Positions 21,561-63,992 of a stretch of 64,000 nucleotides of DNA are shown piece after piece. Position 1 is the first letter of the stretch, and each line of letters starts with the position of its first letter. The stretch lies in sequence record NC_061442.1; one strand, written 5' to 3'. The notes under the pieces were generated by a model. The model was not told the origin of the DNA and did not search any database. It saw nothing but the letters and a program-made list of their open reading frames with translations. Made by a program: the position numbers and the translations under genes.

Positions 21561-21824
21561 ATGGCTGTAGGCTTCGTAAAAGATGATGGCGTTAATGACA
21601 CCATCGAAGCTAACCTGAACAACGAGATTGACCGCGCCCGTGCAGAACTCTTAGGTAAGGGCACTACGCATTGCGTTAACCCTGATTGCGGTGCAGAGAT
21701 TCCCCTCATGCGCCGTGTAGCAATGCCGAATGCACGTTACTGTGTTGCCTGTCAATCAAGCCACGATGGTTCGGCGGTGAGCCTGTACAATCGTCGTGGT
21801 TCAAAAGATTCTCAACTGAGGTAA
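21561..21824 (+). CDS. ybiI: DksA/TraR C4-type zinc finger protein (YbiI-like)
   Basis: DDGVNDTIEANL..EIDRARA..C..CG.EIP..RR.A.P..RYCVACQ..YNRRGSKDSQLR, matching enterobacterial YbiI including the C-terminus. Confidence 0.9.
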   Translation: MAVGFVKDDGVNDTIEANLNNEIDRARAELLGKGTTHCVNPDCGAEIPLMRRVAMPNARYCVACQSSHDGSAVSLYNRRGSKDSQLR

Positions 21825-57544: not shown

Positions 57545-57799
57545 ATGTTCAACATTGCAAAGTTGCCTGACGGGACGCAGGTTCGTTTTCTCGATATGCC
57601 TGACGTGCAGTACCCACCAATGACTGACGAGCAACGTAGCCAGTGTGAGGCGCTGTATGGTAAAGCGCGTGAGCTTGCGAAGAACGTTACCGTGTCTGGG
57701 TTCACTGTAGTTGACGGACTACCGAACGAACGTGTGCAGATTCAAATGCGCCGCACAACTCTCGATAAGATTAATGCGATTGCCAAAGGAGAACAGTAA
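57545..57799 (+). CDS. Small hypothetical protein between the topoisomerase genes
   Basis: GGAG RBS before ATG 57545; TAATG overlap with the next gene. Confidence 0.7.
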
Positions 57800-59457
57800 T
57801 GGCAATTACGCCGAAGAAAGTGAAAGTCAAAAAGGTTAAGCCGACCGCTGTGGCGAAAGCCGCTAAGCCTGCAAAACTCAAAGCGAAAGCCGTGTCAGTC
57901 GATGATATCAAAAAGAAGAAGAAGAAAAGCACCGACGTTGCTGCATCGAACGCTGTTGGTACTTCGCTTTATCCCCTGCTTGGGCAGGACCCAAAGCTGA
58001 TTCACGATGAAGGCCTGTCTGACTATACTCGACGGGCGCTGTCTCACTATGGCGCATACGTTGTTGAAGACCGTGCTATCGCTGACTATCGTGACGGCCT
58101 CAAGCCTGTGCACCGCGCACTGCTGTGGTCGCTGTCTGACTTGGGCTTACGACCAAGCGCGGCGTTCAAGAAGTCGGCTCGTACTGTAGGCGACACAATC
58201 GGTAAGTATCACCCACACGGTGACGCTGCCTGCTACGGTGCGATGGTTACGATTGCGAATACAGTACCTCCTGCTGTAGCGGGTCAAGGTAACTGGGGCA
58301 ACCCTGTGTCTGCTGCTGCTGCGCAACGTTATACCGAAGCGCGTATGTCAAAGTTCACAGGCTCGTTCCTGCTTGACCCTGACTATCTCGAAGTTGTGCC
58401 TCGTGTGCCGAACTTCTCGAATGACCTTGAGATTCCTCTGTACTTGCCAGCGTTGCTTCCGTACATGCTATTCAATAGCTCGGTACCAGCGCCAGCATAT
58501 GGTGTGAAGTGCGGTAACCCACCGTTCAGCTTTAGCTCCGTCAGCAAAGTTGTGTGTGACATGCTCAACGGCGTTCAATACGATGCGAAGAAGCTCGCTA
58601 AGACGCTCAAGATCGTCCACACGTACGGCTGTGAAGACGTGACGACTGACGAGGAGATGCTGCAACTGATCTCTACAGGCAAGGGCAAAGTCACGTACCA
58701 GCCGCTAATGCACGTCGATGAAAAGAACAAGCTGGTCATCATCCAGACCTATGTACCTGCTGGTATGTCGAAGCTCGACGCCATCACGAAGAAGCTGGAG
58801 AAGATTGGCGAGTGGAACGGCGTTGTGTCTGCGCGTAACGCAAGCGGTAAGAAGAACAAGCACTCTGGTCCGTATGGCGCGGCATTCGAAATCAAATGCC
58901 GAGGCAGCGAAGACCTGTTGTATGAGACTGCGAAGAAGGTCATGCGGGAAGTGACTTCGAGCGTCAACTATACGCTGGGTGTAACCGTTCGTCGTGCTGA
59001 TGCTTCAAACAAGTTCATGTACCTCGACTACCTGAAGTATTTCAAAGCGTGGATTGCGTATCGCATTAAGCTCGAAACTGCGATGCTCCAGAACAAGCTG
59101 ACGAAAGCAGAGAAGGCATTGCACTTACAGCAAGTCTACCTATGGGCTGTAGACAACATGGACAAGCTGCTCAAAGTGTTGCCGAAAGTGTTGGTCGCTG
59201 CTGACCCTGACGCGATGCTTGCGAAGCTGTGTAAGATTCCTGTTGAAGATGCGAAGATCATCCTCGACCGTCAGGTACGTAAACTGGCGAAACTGGAACG
59301 CAGTGGTCTGCTCGCTAAGATTAAAGAAATCAAGGCAGAGATTGCTGGATATAAAGCAGGTCTGAAAGAGCCGGGCAAATACGCGGCAGAAGGTACTGCG
59401 GCGAAAGTTAAGGCGTATATGAAATCGCCTGACGACAAGATGCCTGTCAATCTGTAA
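57799..59457 (+). CDS. gyrA: Type IIA DNA topoisomerase, breakage-reunion subunit (GyrA/ParC family, no CTD)
   Basis: [37 protein letters not shown] (catalytic Tyr). Confidence 0.95.
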
Positions 59458-59473
59458 TAGATCTGTAAATACA

Positions 59474-59730: not shown

Positions 59731-61071
59731 TTGGCATTCAAAGTGTCGCTAGGGCCGGCAGGATATGGTCCTCAACTCTTAATGAAGTTTGGAAATCCAT
59801 ACATGAAAAATCAGGTAGCCAACCTCAAAGCTGGTTTGGAGAAAGTCAATGCAGTTCTGACCTCTCTGCGTTCAGGAAAGAACTTGAAACGCCAGCATGT
59901 TGTTGATTCATTAGGTCAACCGACCTCTGTTTTAGCTGATCTCACGAAGGCATTAAAGAGTAATACCTACAAGTCATACCCCGATGTAATACAGTTGCGT
60001 GATTCAGTTCGTGCAACCTGTACTTCCTGCCTAAGCCTGTCAGAGCAAGTGGCTGCTCGTCGTATCAAGCCACGTGAACTGATGGAAAAGCTCGGAGAAA
60101 TTGTAAAGTCGTTCGACGCCGACGCCAAGTTGGCTAAGTCGTGCTTGGGCTACCTGCCTGAATCACGCAAAACTCTCAGTCTCGATGATCTCCCAGAAGA
60201 CAGCAAAGAGCGCTTAGAAGCTCTCAAAGCTATCGACAAAGAGGTGTACGAGAACGAAGCGAACGATAAAGCTATACGCCGTGAGCAACGCGAAGACGCA
60301 GCGACTGCCAAAACAAGTCGTGTGTTACAGCGCCTCAAGGACGCTTACTCTCACAAGGTCCCGAGAACGTTCAACAAAGCTATTCAAATAATCCAACTTC
60401 CTGTGATGGCTCGATTCGGTACACTCGCCATGAGTCCTGAATCGCTCTCTCGTATGGGCTTCAAAATCGAAACCGCCGGTCTGCACTCAACCCCTAGTTC
60501 GGACTTAGGTATCGTCTTTGAAAACCAACTTCTACTGTTCTTCCGTATGTCCGACGCGAAAGGCATGGCAGAAGAAGCTGCGAAAGATCACAAGATGCTT
60601 GATGGAACTCTCGTCGAACGCAAACGCCTCCAGAAAGAACGCAACGCAGAACGCCGCGATCTCAAGAAGCTGAACAAGCTCCTCGAAGAATCGAAGTCGC
60701 TCAAAGCTCGTCGTGCTCTCCGTGAACAAATCGCAGAGACTCAGACAGAGATTGACGACATTACGGCGAAGCTCGATGCGATGGAGTACAAAGTGCGTGA
60801 GTCCGGTTCCCGCGAGCGTGTGTATCGTCAGATGAAAACATCTAGCGATCATGCGATGCTGGATTATCTTAACCCCATTGTCGATATGATTAACGAGAAG
60901 GGAAGTTCCACGTTAGGTCTGTTTACTACCATGCCGTTACGCGGTGTGATGAAGGATTCAGACGTGCATTGTGCTTGGCTTATGGAGAAATCAGCGATCA
61001 ACTTGTTGCTGCGCCACACTGGCGGCGATATGAAGTTGCAGAACTGGTTCCTGCCGTGGACTAATGGCTAA
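59731..61071 (+). CDS. Hypothetical protein with internal coiled coil (start uncertain)
   Basis: Long ORF; TTG 59731 or ATG 59782. Confidence 0.8.
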   Translation: MAFKVSLGPAGYGPQLLMKFGNPYMKNQVANLKAGLEKVNAVLTSLRSGKNLKRQHVVDSLGQPTSVLADLTKALKSNTYKSYPDVIQLRDSVRATCTSCLSLSEQVAARRIKPRELMEKLGEIVKSFDADAKLAKSCLGYLPESRKTLSLDDLPEDSKERLEALKAIDKEVYENEANDKAIRREQREDAATAKTSRVLQRLKDAYSHKVPRTFNKAIQIIQLPVMARFGTLAMSPESLSRMGFKIETAGLHSTPSSDLGIVFENQLLLFFRMSDAKGMAEEAAKDHKMLDGTLVERKRLQKERNAERRDLKKLNKLLEESKSLKARRALREQIAETQTEIDDITAKLDAMEYKVRESGSRERVYRQMKTSSDHAMLDYLNPIVDMINEKGSSTLGLFTTMPLRGVMKDSDVHCAWLMEKSAINLLLRHTGGDMKLQNWFLPWTNG

Positions 61072-61603
61072 CGAGAACCGTTTACCGGCGGTGCAGAAGG
61101 GTGATTTGTCACAGTGTATCATCTGCCAGAAGTTCAGTAGATCGATTCACTACCATCACACCATTCCCCGCTCACTGGGTGGCGAAGATAGTCTTCAAAT
61201 CCCTATAGACGGTGACTGCCACACAACGCTTCACGCAAAAGCAGAAGCTGTGGTAGCGAAGTTAGCAGGTAACCGTAAGCAACCAATCGGGACGTTTTGG
61301 GATAACCCTGAGACAGAACGACGAGCACAAACGTGGCTAGACATTCTAGTTGATGCTATGCTTAACCCACCGGTGCAGCCCGGACAGAAAGAAGTGCTGC
61401 TACCGATGATCAAGGTTGACATGGAAACTAGACATGCTCTCGAACTCTTGAAGCGCGACACGCCTGGCATTACTAATATGAGCCAAGTGTTGCGATATTG
61501 TATTGAGACAACATTAAAAGCGAAGGGGTTAAAAAATGGCGAATCAAAAAGTACGCACTCTGGACATCAAAGCACTCGTAAAAAACGAACTGACCTGTGG
61601 TGA
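61064..61603 (+). CDS. HNH endonuclease with C-terminal RHH-like segment
   Basis: CIIC...HHTIPRSLGG...IPIDGDCHTTLH. Confidence 0.8.
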   Translation: MANENRLPAVQKGDLSQCIICQKFSRSIHYHHTIPRSLGGEDSLQIPIDGDCHTTLHAKAEAVVAKLAGNRKQPIGTFWDNPETERRAQTWLDILVDAMLNPPVQPGQKEVLLPMIKVDMETRHALELLKRDTPGITNMSQVLRYCIETTLKAKGLKNGESKSTHSGHQSTRKKRTDLW

Positions 61604-62402
61604 TTGCCGAGGTCTGACTCGTGATGCTCTTTTACCGACTGCGGAGAAACCGTGTGCTACGCAAGGTCAGTTGGCCGATTCTAAGATCTGCAAACACTAT
61701 CGCTCCGACAGCCAATCGCTGACCGAGTTGATGACCGAGCATGGTGATTCACTTGTTGGGCTTTTCAATACGTTCAAAAACTTCACAGACAAAGACCTGC
61801 GCGTTGTCGCTGGTATGTTGTTAGCTGAATCGAAAACTCGCCGCCACGGTGTGCGCATGGGGCAAGCAGTATTCGTGCGCTATCAAGGGCGCGAGACACG
61901 CAACTACCTGAACAACTTCATGGCAGCGCGTGTGTTGGATGTAGACGACGATACGATTCGCCTGATCAGTGAGAAGGGTGACATTGTGTTGACGTATGCA
62001 AACACAGGATTCAATGGTCCGTCCGTATATACTAAGAAGCAATTTGCTAAACTGCGTAAAGAGATGATCAGTGCTGGCAAGCTGATTGACCCTGAACGCG
62101 AGATCAAGACTGCCAAGCGCAATCTCCCGCAAGAAGACAACGTTAACTTCTCCGCACCGAGCGACCTCGATGGGTTCTCTATTCCTCTTATGGAAGACGT
62201 GGCCAAAGGCCGTGGCGGTAAGCGTAAAGGTAAGAAGACCCAGACGTTGGTCGATATTGTGAGCATGATCGAAAGTGGTCATGACATGGGAGCGGAGCAA
62301 GACGAGTCTGGCGTAATGTCACTCGGCGGCAACAGCTATCGCCACAAGAAGAAGAAACTTAACGTCGGTAAGAATGGCGTGGTTGAACTTGGTGATATGT
62401 AA
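61536..62402 (+). CDS. Hypothetical protein with Cys4 metal site and SH3/Tudor-like region
   Basis: CGDC..C..C; MGQAVFVRY...ARVLDVD. Confidence 0.75.
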   Translation: MANQKVRTLDIKALVKNELTCGDCRGLTRDALLPTAEKPCATQGQLADSKICKHYRSDSQSLTELMTEHGDSLVGLFNTFKNFTDKDLRVVAGMLLAESKTRRHGVRMGQAVFVRYQGRETRNYLNNFMAARVLDVDDDTIRLISEKGDIVLTYANTGFNGPSVYTKKQFAKLRKEMISAGKLIDPEREIKTAKRNLPQEDNVNFSAPSDLDGFSIPLMEDVAKGRGGKRKGKKTQTLVDIVSMIESGHDMGAEQDESGVMSLGGNSYRHKKKKLNVGKNGVVELGDM

Positions 62403-62460
62403 GTTAAGGTCTACACAGCAAATATACTTCCAAAAACAATACGAATAGGATCTCGGAAAA

Positions 62461-63603
62461 ATGATCACAACAGAAGAATCAGGCCTTAACGAATATCTTT
62501 CACGCCGTCTGGGTATCGAGGAGAACTCAGAGGAATTCCGTCAAGTATACGCTGCAACGATACGTTACATAGGCAGCGGGTATAAATCTATCGCGGATTA
62601 TCACCGTGATTTGCAAGCAGCAATTGACTTTAAGCAGTTCGAATTTACTGCTCCTGACTTGCGTATTGATATCTCTTCCGTGTGTCGCTTCACGTTGAAG
62701 ATGCGTTACTTTGTGTTGGCTGTTTGTCTGCACAAAGACCCAGTAGCAACAATTAAAAAATATGCGTCGTATGGCCTGTCTCACCGCGAAGCTGTCCTCG
62801 CTTGGAACCTGATTCTCAAGCACGACAATCAACGTAAGCAGATGCGCCGTACGGCTAAAGCGCGAGCGAAGACAAAAGGCGGATTGGATATCACAATGGT
62901 GTCCAGCCGTGAACTACGCTTGCGTCTTGATCAAACGACTAGCCTGTTTGGTGAGTTACATCGTAACGCCAAGCGTCTGGTCAGAAAGAATTTGCAGTGG
63001 GTGTCAGTCAGCCATAACATTCCGATTGCTGATCTGACTTGCGATATCATGTGCAAGGTGTTGTTGTCGTACTATCAATCCTTGCCTAATCGTTTCAGCG
63101 AGGGCCACCAGCTCAACTATCTTCGTGCCTCATTGACGAACCGCATTAACAACATGAACAACTACTACGGCGCAGAGAAGCGCAAGCGTATGAAGAAAGT
63201 TGGCGAAGACAAGTATGAGATTGTGGTTATGTCTGACAATCAGATGTGGCACAATCCAGACGACGACAGCTCCAACTCATACGAAGACATGTTGGGTGAG
63301 GATGCTCGTGTGCATACCGAGCAGATGGAAAACAATCTGACTATCAATCGTCTTCTGGAAGAGGCCGAGGGCACTAAGCGCCACAAACTGTATCAGACTG
63401 TTCTCGGACGGGATTGCGCCGAGTTCACTGAATATCTGCGTGAGAACGGGCTACTCAAACAGACCATGACATGCGCCACTCAGTGGATCATGGCTAAACC
63501 TACGAAGTTCATACGCAAGACCTTAGCCAGTTGGTTGCAGGTCAGCGTTGACGCTATCACAGGCGGTCTGGAAACGTTACGCGGTTCATTACAGGTAGCA
63601 TGA
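62461..63603 (+). CDS. Putative divergent sigma-70-family factor
   Basis: Region-2-like LVRKN...IADLTCDIMCKVL...NYLRASLTNRI; region 3.2/4.1-like DSSNSYEDML...INRLL; HTH-like RKTLASWLQVSVDAITGGLETLR. Confidence 0.6.
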   Translation: MITTEESGLNEYLSRRLGIEENSEEFRQVYAATIRYIGSGYKSIADYHRDLQAAIDFKQFEFTAPDLRIDISSVCRFTLKMRYFVLAVCLHKDPVATIKKYASYGLSHREAVLAWNLILKHDNQRKQMRRTAKARAKTKGGLDITMVSSRELRLRLDQTTSLFGELHRNAKRLVRKNLQWVSVSHNIPIADLTCDIMCKVLLSYYQSLPNRFSEGHQLNYLRASLTNRINNMNNYYGAEKRKRMKKVGEDKYEIVVMSDNQMWHNPDDDSSNSYEDMLGEDARVHTEQMENNLTINRLLEEAEGTKRHKLYQTVLGRDCAEFTEYLRENGLLKQTMTCATQWIMAKPTKFIRKTLASWLQVSVDAITGGLETLRGSLQVA

Positions 63604-63992
63604 GAGGTCACCGTATAGTTATGCAGCAGGCAATCATTAACACTGACGTAGAGCGCTCTGCACTCGCGCTGTTCAGTCGTCCTCAGTTGGATGAGGACTA
63701 TAAGCGTACCGTGTTGTATCTCGTGTATAAGACTGTAAATCGTAATGGCATGATGCAAGTCAATCGTCTGCTGTTCGAATTGAGCCAGAAGTATGAACTC
63801 AACAAAGAAGATGTGAAGTCTGCTATCGGTGCGCTCAAAGCTCCGTACGCATTCAACGCGCTCTCTGTGTTTGTACCTCGCGCAGATACAAAAGCAAATC
63901 GTGTGTGTCGTGTGAACTCCACACTGGCAATCGAAAGTTGGATTGCAGAAGTGGAACAAACCCGTCCACATATCGCACACTTGTTGCAGTAG
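63600..63992 (+). CDS. Hypothetical protein (possible winged helix)
   Basis: ATGA overlap. Confidence 0.7.
   Translation: MRGHRIVMQQAIINTDVERSALALFSRPQLDEDYKRTVLYLVYKTVNRNGMMQVNRLLFELSQKYELNKEDVKSAIGALKAPYAFNALSVFVPRADTKANRVCRVNSTLAIESWIAEVEQTRPHIAHLLQ

Follow-up and report, generated by a model that had tools for sequence, protein, structure and literature searches.

A gene beside the DnaB helicase gene of jumbo phage pEa_SNUABM_35 probably codes for a highly divergent sigma-70 superfamily protein

The right end of the genome of Erwinia phage pEa_SNUABM_35 (NC_061442.1), an Alexandravirus and jumbo phage of 261,719 bp whose host is the fire-blight bacterium, carries an open reading frame (ORF) for a protein of 380 amino acids (aa) that we propose to be a distant relative of bacterial sigma factors. 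The window analysed here is the whole stretch of 64,000 nucleotides (nt) corresponding to bases 197720-261719 of that genome, and positions refer to it unless stated otherwise. A preliminary description of the window had read a hidden divergent sigma factor in this ORF, and the limits, strand, ATG start and product length that it gave were all correct. The family of the protein, PHROG 19229, carries the label "unknown function", and homologues are named "hypothetical protein" in all phage records searched. Single-sequence and profile hidden Markov model searches against PDB sequences returned nothing relevant. The search of public sequencing runs retrieved metagenomic DNA runs and one metagenomic RNA run (6% of words), and no infection transcriptome. 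The gene and the parts of its product are arranged as follows:

62461..63603, + strand: target ORF, ATG start, 380 aa, sigma-70-family-like; phrog_19229; orthologue of PaBG gene 112 and Lu11 gp184
62461..62901, + strand: N-terminal domain, residues 1-147; nine helices, no recognisable fold relative; R68 invariant and D110 nearly invariant in the family
62902..63198, + strand: sigma-2-like domain, residues 148-246; conserved D191-L, L208-P-N and H216-QLNYLR...N231
63199..63312, + strand: linker, residues 247-284; short beta-hairpin, conserved S-(D/E)-N-Q motif (S258, Q261), then a disordered acidic stretch DDDSSNSYEDML
63313..63600, + strand: sigma-4-like domain, residues 285-380; extra helices at about 316-345 and a C-terminal helix-turn-helix (HTH) at 352-379

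The full-length AlphaFold2 model, computed from an alignment of 25 sequences, is all-helical with a mean predicted local distance difference test score (pLDDT) of 81, and it partitions into the domains listed above, the only long stretch of low confidence being residues 250-284 (pLDDT <50). When the model was compared exhaustively with 48,161 PDB chains, eight of the nine best rows were sigma factors. The top match is the sigma-2 domain of Bartonella RpoE (5uxx_C; Z 10.3, root-mean-square deviation 2.2 A over 82 residues, model residues 149-244). The sigma-2 domain of SigR (1h3l_B) reaches Z 8.8, and 2o7g, 1sig and 3ugo are listed for the same region. SigH and SigL of M. tuberculosis, together with other chains of extracytoplasmic function (ECF) sigma factors, align across residues 148-380 over 135-158 residues, whereas gp55 of phage T4 (7d7d_F) lies far below the ECF sigma factors at Z 6.3. 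A Foldseek search, which the preliminary description had named as a check, points the same way: the first match among the AFDB clusters is an "RNA polymerase sigma factor" (probability 0.98, residues 156-378) with many sigma-70 entries beneath it, and in BFVD, a library of viral models, the first matches outside the protein's own family are phage sigma factors. Foldseek against the PDB gave weak matches only, mixed with bestrophin channels. The sigma-2 and sigma-4 folds expected in the preliminary description are both present in the prediction. Residues 148-246 form the helical bundle of regions 2.1-2.4, and a sigma-4-like domain with a C-terminal HTH follows the sigma-2-like domain and the linker, with extra helices and with only 31 HTH columns that align by sequence.

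Profile comparisons were made with a family alignment of 77 sequences (A3). Two wider searches for ECF sequences had returned almost only RpoE orthologues, so the ECF profile was built from paralogues in five genomes; its 20 sequences comprise E. coli RpoE and FecI, RpoE orthologues and these paralogues. A co-linear match of family positions 142-377 to ECF positions 14-180 was obtained by hhalign (score 27.0, P 0.0042). The reversed template scored 12.0, 100 column-shuffled templates scored 11.6 ± 1.9 (maximum 17.3), and shuffles of 10-column blocks, in which local motifs are kept, scored 17.1 ± 3.4 (maximum 30.3). An initial comparison with six E. coli sigma paralogues had been marginal (P 0.041). 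Taken domain by domain, the sigma-2-like part matches ECF sigma-2 with P 2.7e-4 over 80 columns (controls 0.08-0.31), and the sigma-4-like part matches the ECF sigma-4 HTH with P 4.5e-4 over 31 columns (controls 0.04-0.24); over all cross-domain and reversed controls, P ranges from 0.04 to 0.64. In addition, the NCBIfam model TIGR02937 (sigma70-ECF) is matched by 15 of the 77 family members (best E 2.6e-6) and TIGR02985 by 10, always at residues ~140-290, where the sigma-2-like domain lies, while no unrelated model is matched by more than three members. Pfam Sigma70_r2 is touched weakly by two of the 77. The region 2 letter pattern that the preliminary description had aligned by eye survives in part: hhalign places the segment on ECF regions 2.1-2.4, but the residue spacings do not fit (D191 L192 ... 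Y220 L221 ... N227).

Several observations weigh against a relationship with sigma factors. The Pfam scan of the target protein gave no domain match. None of the 77 family members reaches the curated cut-off of a sigma model (best 27.2 bits against 42.9, for TIGR02937), all Foldseek E-values for the protein exceed 0.1, and a Z of 10.3 falls, according to the comparison tool's own note, within the chance range of helical bundles, values of 8-10 being unexceptional for all-helical models. The last three points would suit a protein unrelated to sigma whose resemblance is a chance likeness of helical bundles. Weak Foldseek E-values are to be expected where two small domains differ in their relative orientation, but they mean that structure by itself is not conclusive. 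Chance likeness seems to us very improbable, as the sigma-2-like and sigma-4-like domains separately find their respective counterparts, the order of the two is correct, the controls (reversed, cross-domain and shuffled) lie clearly below, sigma factors come first in three structure libraries, and the 15 members of the 77 match the same sigma model at the same position. Moreover, an independent HHpred result has been published for PaBG gene 112 (97.2% to sigma factors and 96.9% to SigmaE; PMC7412058, 2020), whose authors spoke of a possible sigma factor and considered the result too weak for confidence (PMC7412058). The sigma idea is thus not wholly new: the 2020 remark on PaBG gene 112 foreshadowed our reading, yet no database annotation carries it. 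Judged by profiles and models together, remote homology of the protein to the sigma-70 superfamily is well supported and, in our view, highly probable. The proposal of a hidden, divergent sigma-70-family protein is backed by structure, by profile comparison and by sub-threshold matches of its relatives to family models.

Our preferred interpretation goes one step further. The protein would be a very divergent member of the sigma-70 superfamily, in which an ECF-like core (sigma-2, acidic linker and sigma-4) is joined to a helical domain of 147 residues, and it would most likely direct the host RNA polymerase (RNAP) to a class of phage promoters. From the sequence comparisons and models at hand, we consider this moderately probable.

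The individual domains bear on this interpretation in different ways. Modelled alone, the N-terminal domain has a pLDDT of 94.5 and a predicted template modelling score (pTM) of 0.89. Its best match among the 48,161 PDB chains has Z 4.8 (none reaches Z>=5), Foldseek against the AFDB clusters and the PDB found nothing, and hhalign found no match to ECF sigma-2 or sigma-4. This domain may therefore represent a new helical fold; the preliminary description had rightly noted an extension without a sigma counterpart, although its length is ~147 aa rather than the ~130 aa proposed. In the sigma-2-like domain, helix 189-207 (DLTCDIMCKVLLSYYQS) aligns with ECF region 2.1/2.2 (DVVQEAFIKAY), and its residue D191 is invariant in two further alignments (A1 and A2). 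Conservation within the family peaks in the segment L208-P-N ... H216-QLNYLR ... N231, which aligns with the loop and helix for -10 recognition in ECF sigma factors. ECF sigma factors read the -10 element through the loop and helix that match L-P-N...HQLNYLR...N, and by this analogy the case for the segment L208-P-N ... N231 as a putative -10-type reader is circumstantial. The linker occupies the position of the sigma-2/sigma-4 linker (region 3.2-like). The acidic segment DDDSSNSYEDML and the HTH segment TLASWLQVSVDAITGGLETLR, both picked out in the preliminary description, were found at residues 267-278, inside the low-confidence stretch, and at residues 354-374, as the last two helices, respectively. 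The sigma-4-like domain contains ~30 extra residues, with G316, F322 and L326 nearly invariant. The recognition helix of its HTH is not well conserved, and basic residues are scarce there, which makes -35-type DNA reading doubtful and adds to the points against our interpretation.

Binding to the core enzyme was approached by predicting a complex between residues 140-250 of the target and residues 240-330 of E. coli beta-prime. Modelling with the beta-prime clamp helices, another check named in the preliminary description, yielded the canonical interface (beta-prime 267-298 with target 159-167 and 186-205) with a score of 0.50 against 0.17 for the best control, which is graded only as 'weak support'. 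In the calibration, the mark is reached by 51 of 78 solved complexes and by 2 of 108 mismatched pairs; scores of <=0.60 comprise only 5 of those 78 solved complexes, yet all 4 mismatches that passed. The score shows likeness more than binding, because complexes of sigma-2 with the clamp helices are solved structures, and it may stem from the prediction model's memory of them. Both the modest score and its possible origin reduce the weight of this prediction.

One possibility is that the protein binds core RNAP like a sigma factor and acts as a decoy, inhibitor or adaptor, displacing host sigma factors so that host or early transcription is shut off, or tethering RNAP to some other phage factor through its N-terminal domain, without reading any promoter. 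A conserved sigma-2 core-binding helix predicted to dock on the clamp helices, a variable and basic-poor recognition helix, a large additional N-terminal domain and the availability of a second, more canonical sigma factor for promoter reading (see below) would all be compatible with such a role. However, the segment resembling the -10-recognition region is the most conserved of the family, which is easier to reconcile with sequence-specific DNA reading than with a passive decoy, and promoter classes with a single box need no -35 reading. We regard this explanation as quite unlikely.

The family is widespread among jumbo phages. Close and intermediate homologues are found in jumbo phages of Erwinia, Dickeya and Yersinia, and the distant orthologues PaBG gene 112 (AGS81997) and Lu11 gp184 share 24-25% full-length identity with the target in the alignment (local identities in tblastn, 25.4% and 27.9%). 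Using distant members as tblastn queries adds Pseudomonas HRDY3, Lauda-like phages, Vibrio GR11A, Xanthomonas PhiXhv and Ralstonia phiRSL1, and the gene occurs in at least 80 sequenced jumbo phages of Erwinia, Dickeya, Yersinia, Pseudomonas, Vibrio, Xanthomonas and Ralstonia. In metagenomes the family comprises ~300 protein clusters; an exhaustive profile search retrieved 298 cluster representatives at E<=1e-3, including 152 at E<=1e-10, and nearly all representatives are 350-400 aa long. We considered whether short entries of about 190-240 aa could be natural forms without the N-terminal domain, and rejected this, as those examined are gene-call artefacts or truncations. Two miscalled entries of 199 and 242 aa (P0131 and P0127) lie on metagenomic contigs L155 and L156. 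On L156 the N-terminal domain is encoded in frame 5' of the called start, and on L155 the match runs ~60 residues 5' of the called start, with the last third of the N-terminal domain kept. To judge from these sequences, the N-terminal domain is an integral part of the family.

The gene is closely associated with two small neighbours:

61536..62402, + strand: upstream ORF, 288 aa, phrog_17701; always precedes the sigma-like gene
63600..63992, + strand: downstream ORF, 130 aa, phrog_27753; its ATG overlaps the stop codon of the target gene (ATGA); always after the target gene and before DnaB

The order is fixed as an ORF of ~250-290 aa, the target gene, an ORF of ~130 aa overlapping its stop codon, the DnaB helicase gene, an ORF and the large terminase gene, and it is kept in PaBG, in Lu11, in a 215-kb metagenomic contig (~24% identity) and in a 6-kb contig. 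The linkage of the flanking genes to the target gene is tight and ancient. Neither flanking ORF has a recognisable domain: in the protein atlas, the 130-aa ORF has sub-threshold winged-helix leads only, and the 288-aa ORF has nothing. The 130-aa protein is a candidate partner, either an anti-sigma factor or a co-factor; by analogy, an anti-sigma role for the product of this overlapping gene would be as reasonable as the co-activator role suggested in the preliminary description. Some records label phrog_17701 'DNA topoisomerase' ('topoisomerase 4 subunit A' in PaBG). This label looks unsupported, because the protein has no Pfam match at E<=1; a genuine gene for a topoisomerase II A subunit, with a Lys-rich N-terminal tail, lies at 57799-59457. 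We also noticed, in the conserved string just 5' of the three-gene cassette, an ORF of 179 aa (61064-61603, + strand) with a sub-threshold match to HNH endonucleases (Pfam E 0.0028; phrog_7370 E 0.005).

The fixed position of the gene in the replication and packaging module, beside DnaB, would also fit a non-transcriptional role and is a further argument against our interpretation. A protein with a sigma fold could serve DNA replication, for example as a helicase-loading or origin-binding factor acting with DnaB and the two linked small proteins, its sigma-like domains being generic DNA- or protein-binding modules. Such a role would agree with a gene order that is invariant from the Erwinia phages to PaBG, Lu11 and the 215-kb metagenomic phage, with the overlap of the stop codon and the next start, with the presence of RecA, SSB and topoisomerase genes nearby, and with the lack of an annotated helicase loader in the stretches inspected. 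Nevertheless, the best structural and profile matches are to sigma factors in particular and not to loaders or initiators, and the predicted interface with the beta-prime clamp helices is the canonical sigma one. In T4, the late-transcription gene 33 sits among replication genes, next to genes 59 and 32, and context alone is therefore no argument against a sigma role. We consider a replication factor unlikely. It is also tempting to imagine a replication-coupled sigma factor whose N-terminal domain would, together with the two small neighbours, link host RNAP to the replisome through DnaB, so that a promoter class is licensed on replicating DNA only, or so that origin-proximal transcription primes or opens DNA for helicase loading. 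This more specific idea is speculative and, in our estimation, rather improbable; if true, it would be a one-polypeptide answer to T4's gp55, gp33 and gp45.

Which promoters a sigma factor of this phage might read can be approached through boxes found by k-mer enrichment in upstream regions, where terminator hairpins are enriched as well. The relevant features are:

193937-194983 (genome coordinates): the other phage sigma factor, 349 aa, homologue of PaBG gene 118 ('RpoD subfamily'); ~2.7 kb before the start of the window
59463..59471, + strand: CTGTAAATA box, one of 35 copies; heads the string 59731 > 61064 > 61536 > target > 63600 > (genome start) DnaB ... TerL
62416..62424, + strand: CAGCAAATA, a degenerate box variant (7/9), 37 nt 5' of the target ATG, of uncertain function
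5360, 60939, 74096, 80885, 114166, 155603, 164520, 202458 (= window 4739) and others (genome coordinates): GCTAATTT sites

The motif CTGTAAA[T/C]A occurs 35 times in the genome against ~4 expected, and its reversed pattern once. At least 21 copies lie within 75 nt 5' of a co-oriented start, usually 18-55 nt before it and often after (A/T)AAT. On the + strand between the box at 59463 and the target gene we found no sigma-70-type promoter and no convincing terminator. The second motif, GCTAATTT, occurs 13 times, at ~9 sites 25-40 nt 5' of a start, and stands mostly before minus-strand genes of the structural region, often just after a terminator hairpin. Two other candidates were discarded: CAGCAAATATA, which has two copies only, the second of them 5' of the 59731 ORF, and the PaBG 8-mer CGAACATG, which is merely start-codon context. 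In Lu11 (NC_017972), CTGTAAA[T/C]A occurs 35 times and the reversed control twice; the first copy of the box coincides with the start of the record's "putative middle/late promoter" feature; GCTAATTT is nearly absent (2 copies). PaBG has 3 copies of CTGTAAA[T/C]A and 10 copies of GCTAATTT in promoter-like contexts.

The second phage sigma factor, similar to PaBG gp118, is encoded ~66 kb 5' of the target gene, directly behind a CTGTAAATA box. It is named 'RNA polymerase sigma factor' only in RefSeq copies, its Pfam Sigma70_r2 match has E 0.059, and the genome scan found no sigma domain above threshold. A pairwise comparison of this protein with the target detected no similarity. Being the more canonical of the two, it could read the boxes alone, which is another point against a promoter-reading role of the target. 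An attempt to assign boxes to sigma factors compared pEa_SNUABM_35, which has both boxes, with Lu11, which has CTGTAAATA only, and PaBG, which has GCTAATTT only. It failed, since genes of both sigma families are present in each of the three. The preliminary description had called the protein the likely reader of a phage promoter class. Two classes of boxes do exist, whereas the status of sole reader was not borne out, given the second sigma factor and the failed comparison. The same description had pointed to a homologue of YbiI, and this is real: a zinc-finger motif of the DksA/TraR type lies at 21684-21764 on the + strand (genome 219403-219483; PF01258, E 1.4e-10, above the cut-off) in a frame of 91 aa, and the product is likely to bind the RNAP secondary channel. 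The sole search for a phage RNA polymerase was aimed at the T7 type and found none in the genome, a result that does not show absence, because the search was blank in all control genomes too.

Returning to our preferred interpretation of a phage-encoded sigma factor, the following course of events can be envisaged. The protein would bind the core of the host (Erwinia) RNAP via the beta-prime clamp helices, using helix 186-205, the equivalent of region 2.1/2.2, and would direct the polymerase to a phage-specific class of promoters in middle or late infection, alongside the RpoD-like sigma factor of the phage. The N-terminal domain, the translationally coupled 130-aa neighbour or both may act as regulators of the protein or connect it with the replication module. 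Most jumbo phages have no RNA polymerase of their own and are obliged to redirect that of the host, by means that are little understood except in T4 and the phiKZ-like phages. Our analysis provides a function-level hypothesis for a core "hypothetical" gene of a jumbo-phage clade. If it is true, this clade would use two sigma factors in its transcription programme, together with at least two phage-specific classes of single-box promoters, and annotation would be corrected across the clade, including fire-blight biocontrol phages. The analysis also delimits a new N-terminal domain, folded with confidence in the model, in front of a sigma core, and an invariant cassette of three genes next to that for the replicative helicase, which makes a coupling of transcription and replication testable.

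Among known systems, the ECF (group 4) sigma factors, such as E. coli RpoE/SigmaE, SigH, SigL and Bartonella RpoE (PDB 5uxx, 5zx2, 6dv9, 1or7), are the best structural and profile matches of the target. Both have a sigma-2 and a sigma-4 domain joined by a flexible linker and no sigma-3, and the complex prediction, with its weak score, puts the region 2.1/2.2-like helix of the target on the beta-prime clamp helices. The overlap of the 3' end of the target gene with a small gene is reminiscent of the anti-sigma genes that often accompany ECF genes, an analogy that may or may not extend to function. In contrast to ECF sigma factors, whose minimal architecture consists of sigma-2 and sigma-4 only in about 170-220 aa, the 380-aa target has a 147-residue N-terminal domain, ~30 extra residues in sigma-4 and a long acidic linker with the S-(D/E)-N-Q motif; it also stays below every curated model cut-off and is encoded in the replication module of a lytic jumbo phage. 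PaBG gene 112 and Lu11 gp184, as orthologues with the same neighbours, show no essential difference from it. The gp118-like sigma factor is likewise a phage protein of the sigma-70 family, of similar length and encoded by a core gene of the same jumbo-phage clade, but it is the more canonical, with a Pfam Sigma70_r2 match of E 3.2e-5 for the PaBG copy and an annotation in RefSeq.

A parallel can finally be drawn with gp55 of T4, a very divergent late sigma factor that recognises a single-box promoter without a -35 element (TATAAATA) and whose action is coupled to replication proteins. This 185-aa protein corresponds to sigma-2 only; the sigma-4 role is taken by a separate protein, gp33, and gp55 works with the gp45 clamp. 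The single box TATAAATA is comparable to the CTGTAAATA box of pEa_SNUABM_35. The target departs from this architecture of a sigma-2-only protein of ~185 aa with a gp33-like partner and a clamp, and no sequence relationship to gp55 was detected. Unlike gp55, it combines in one polypeptide a sigma-2-like domain with a sigma-4-like domain of its own and an N-terminal domain.

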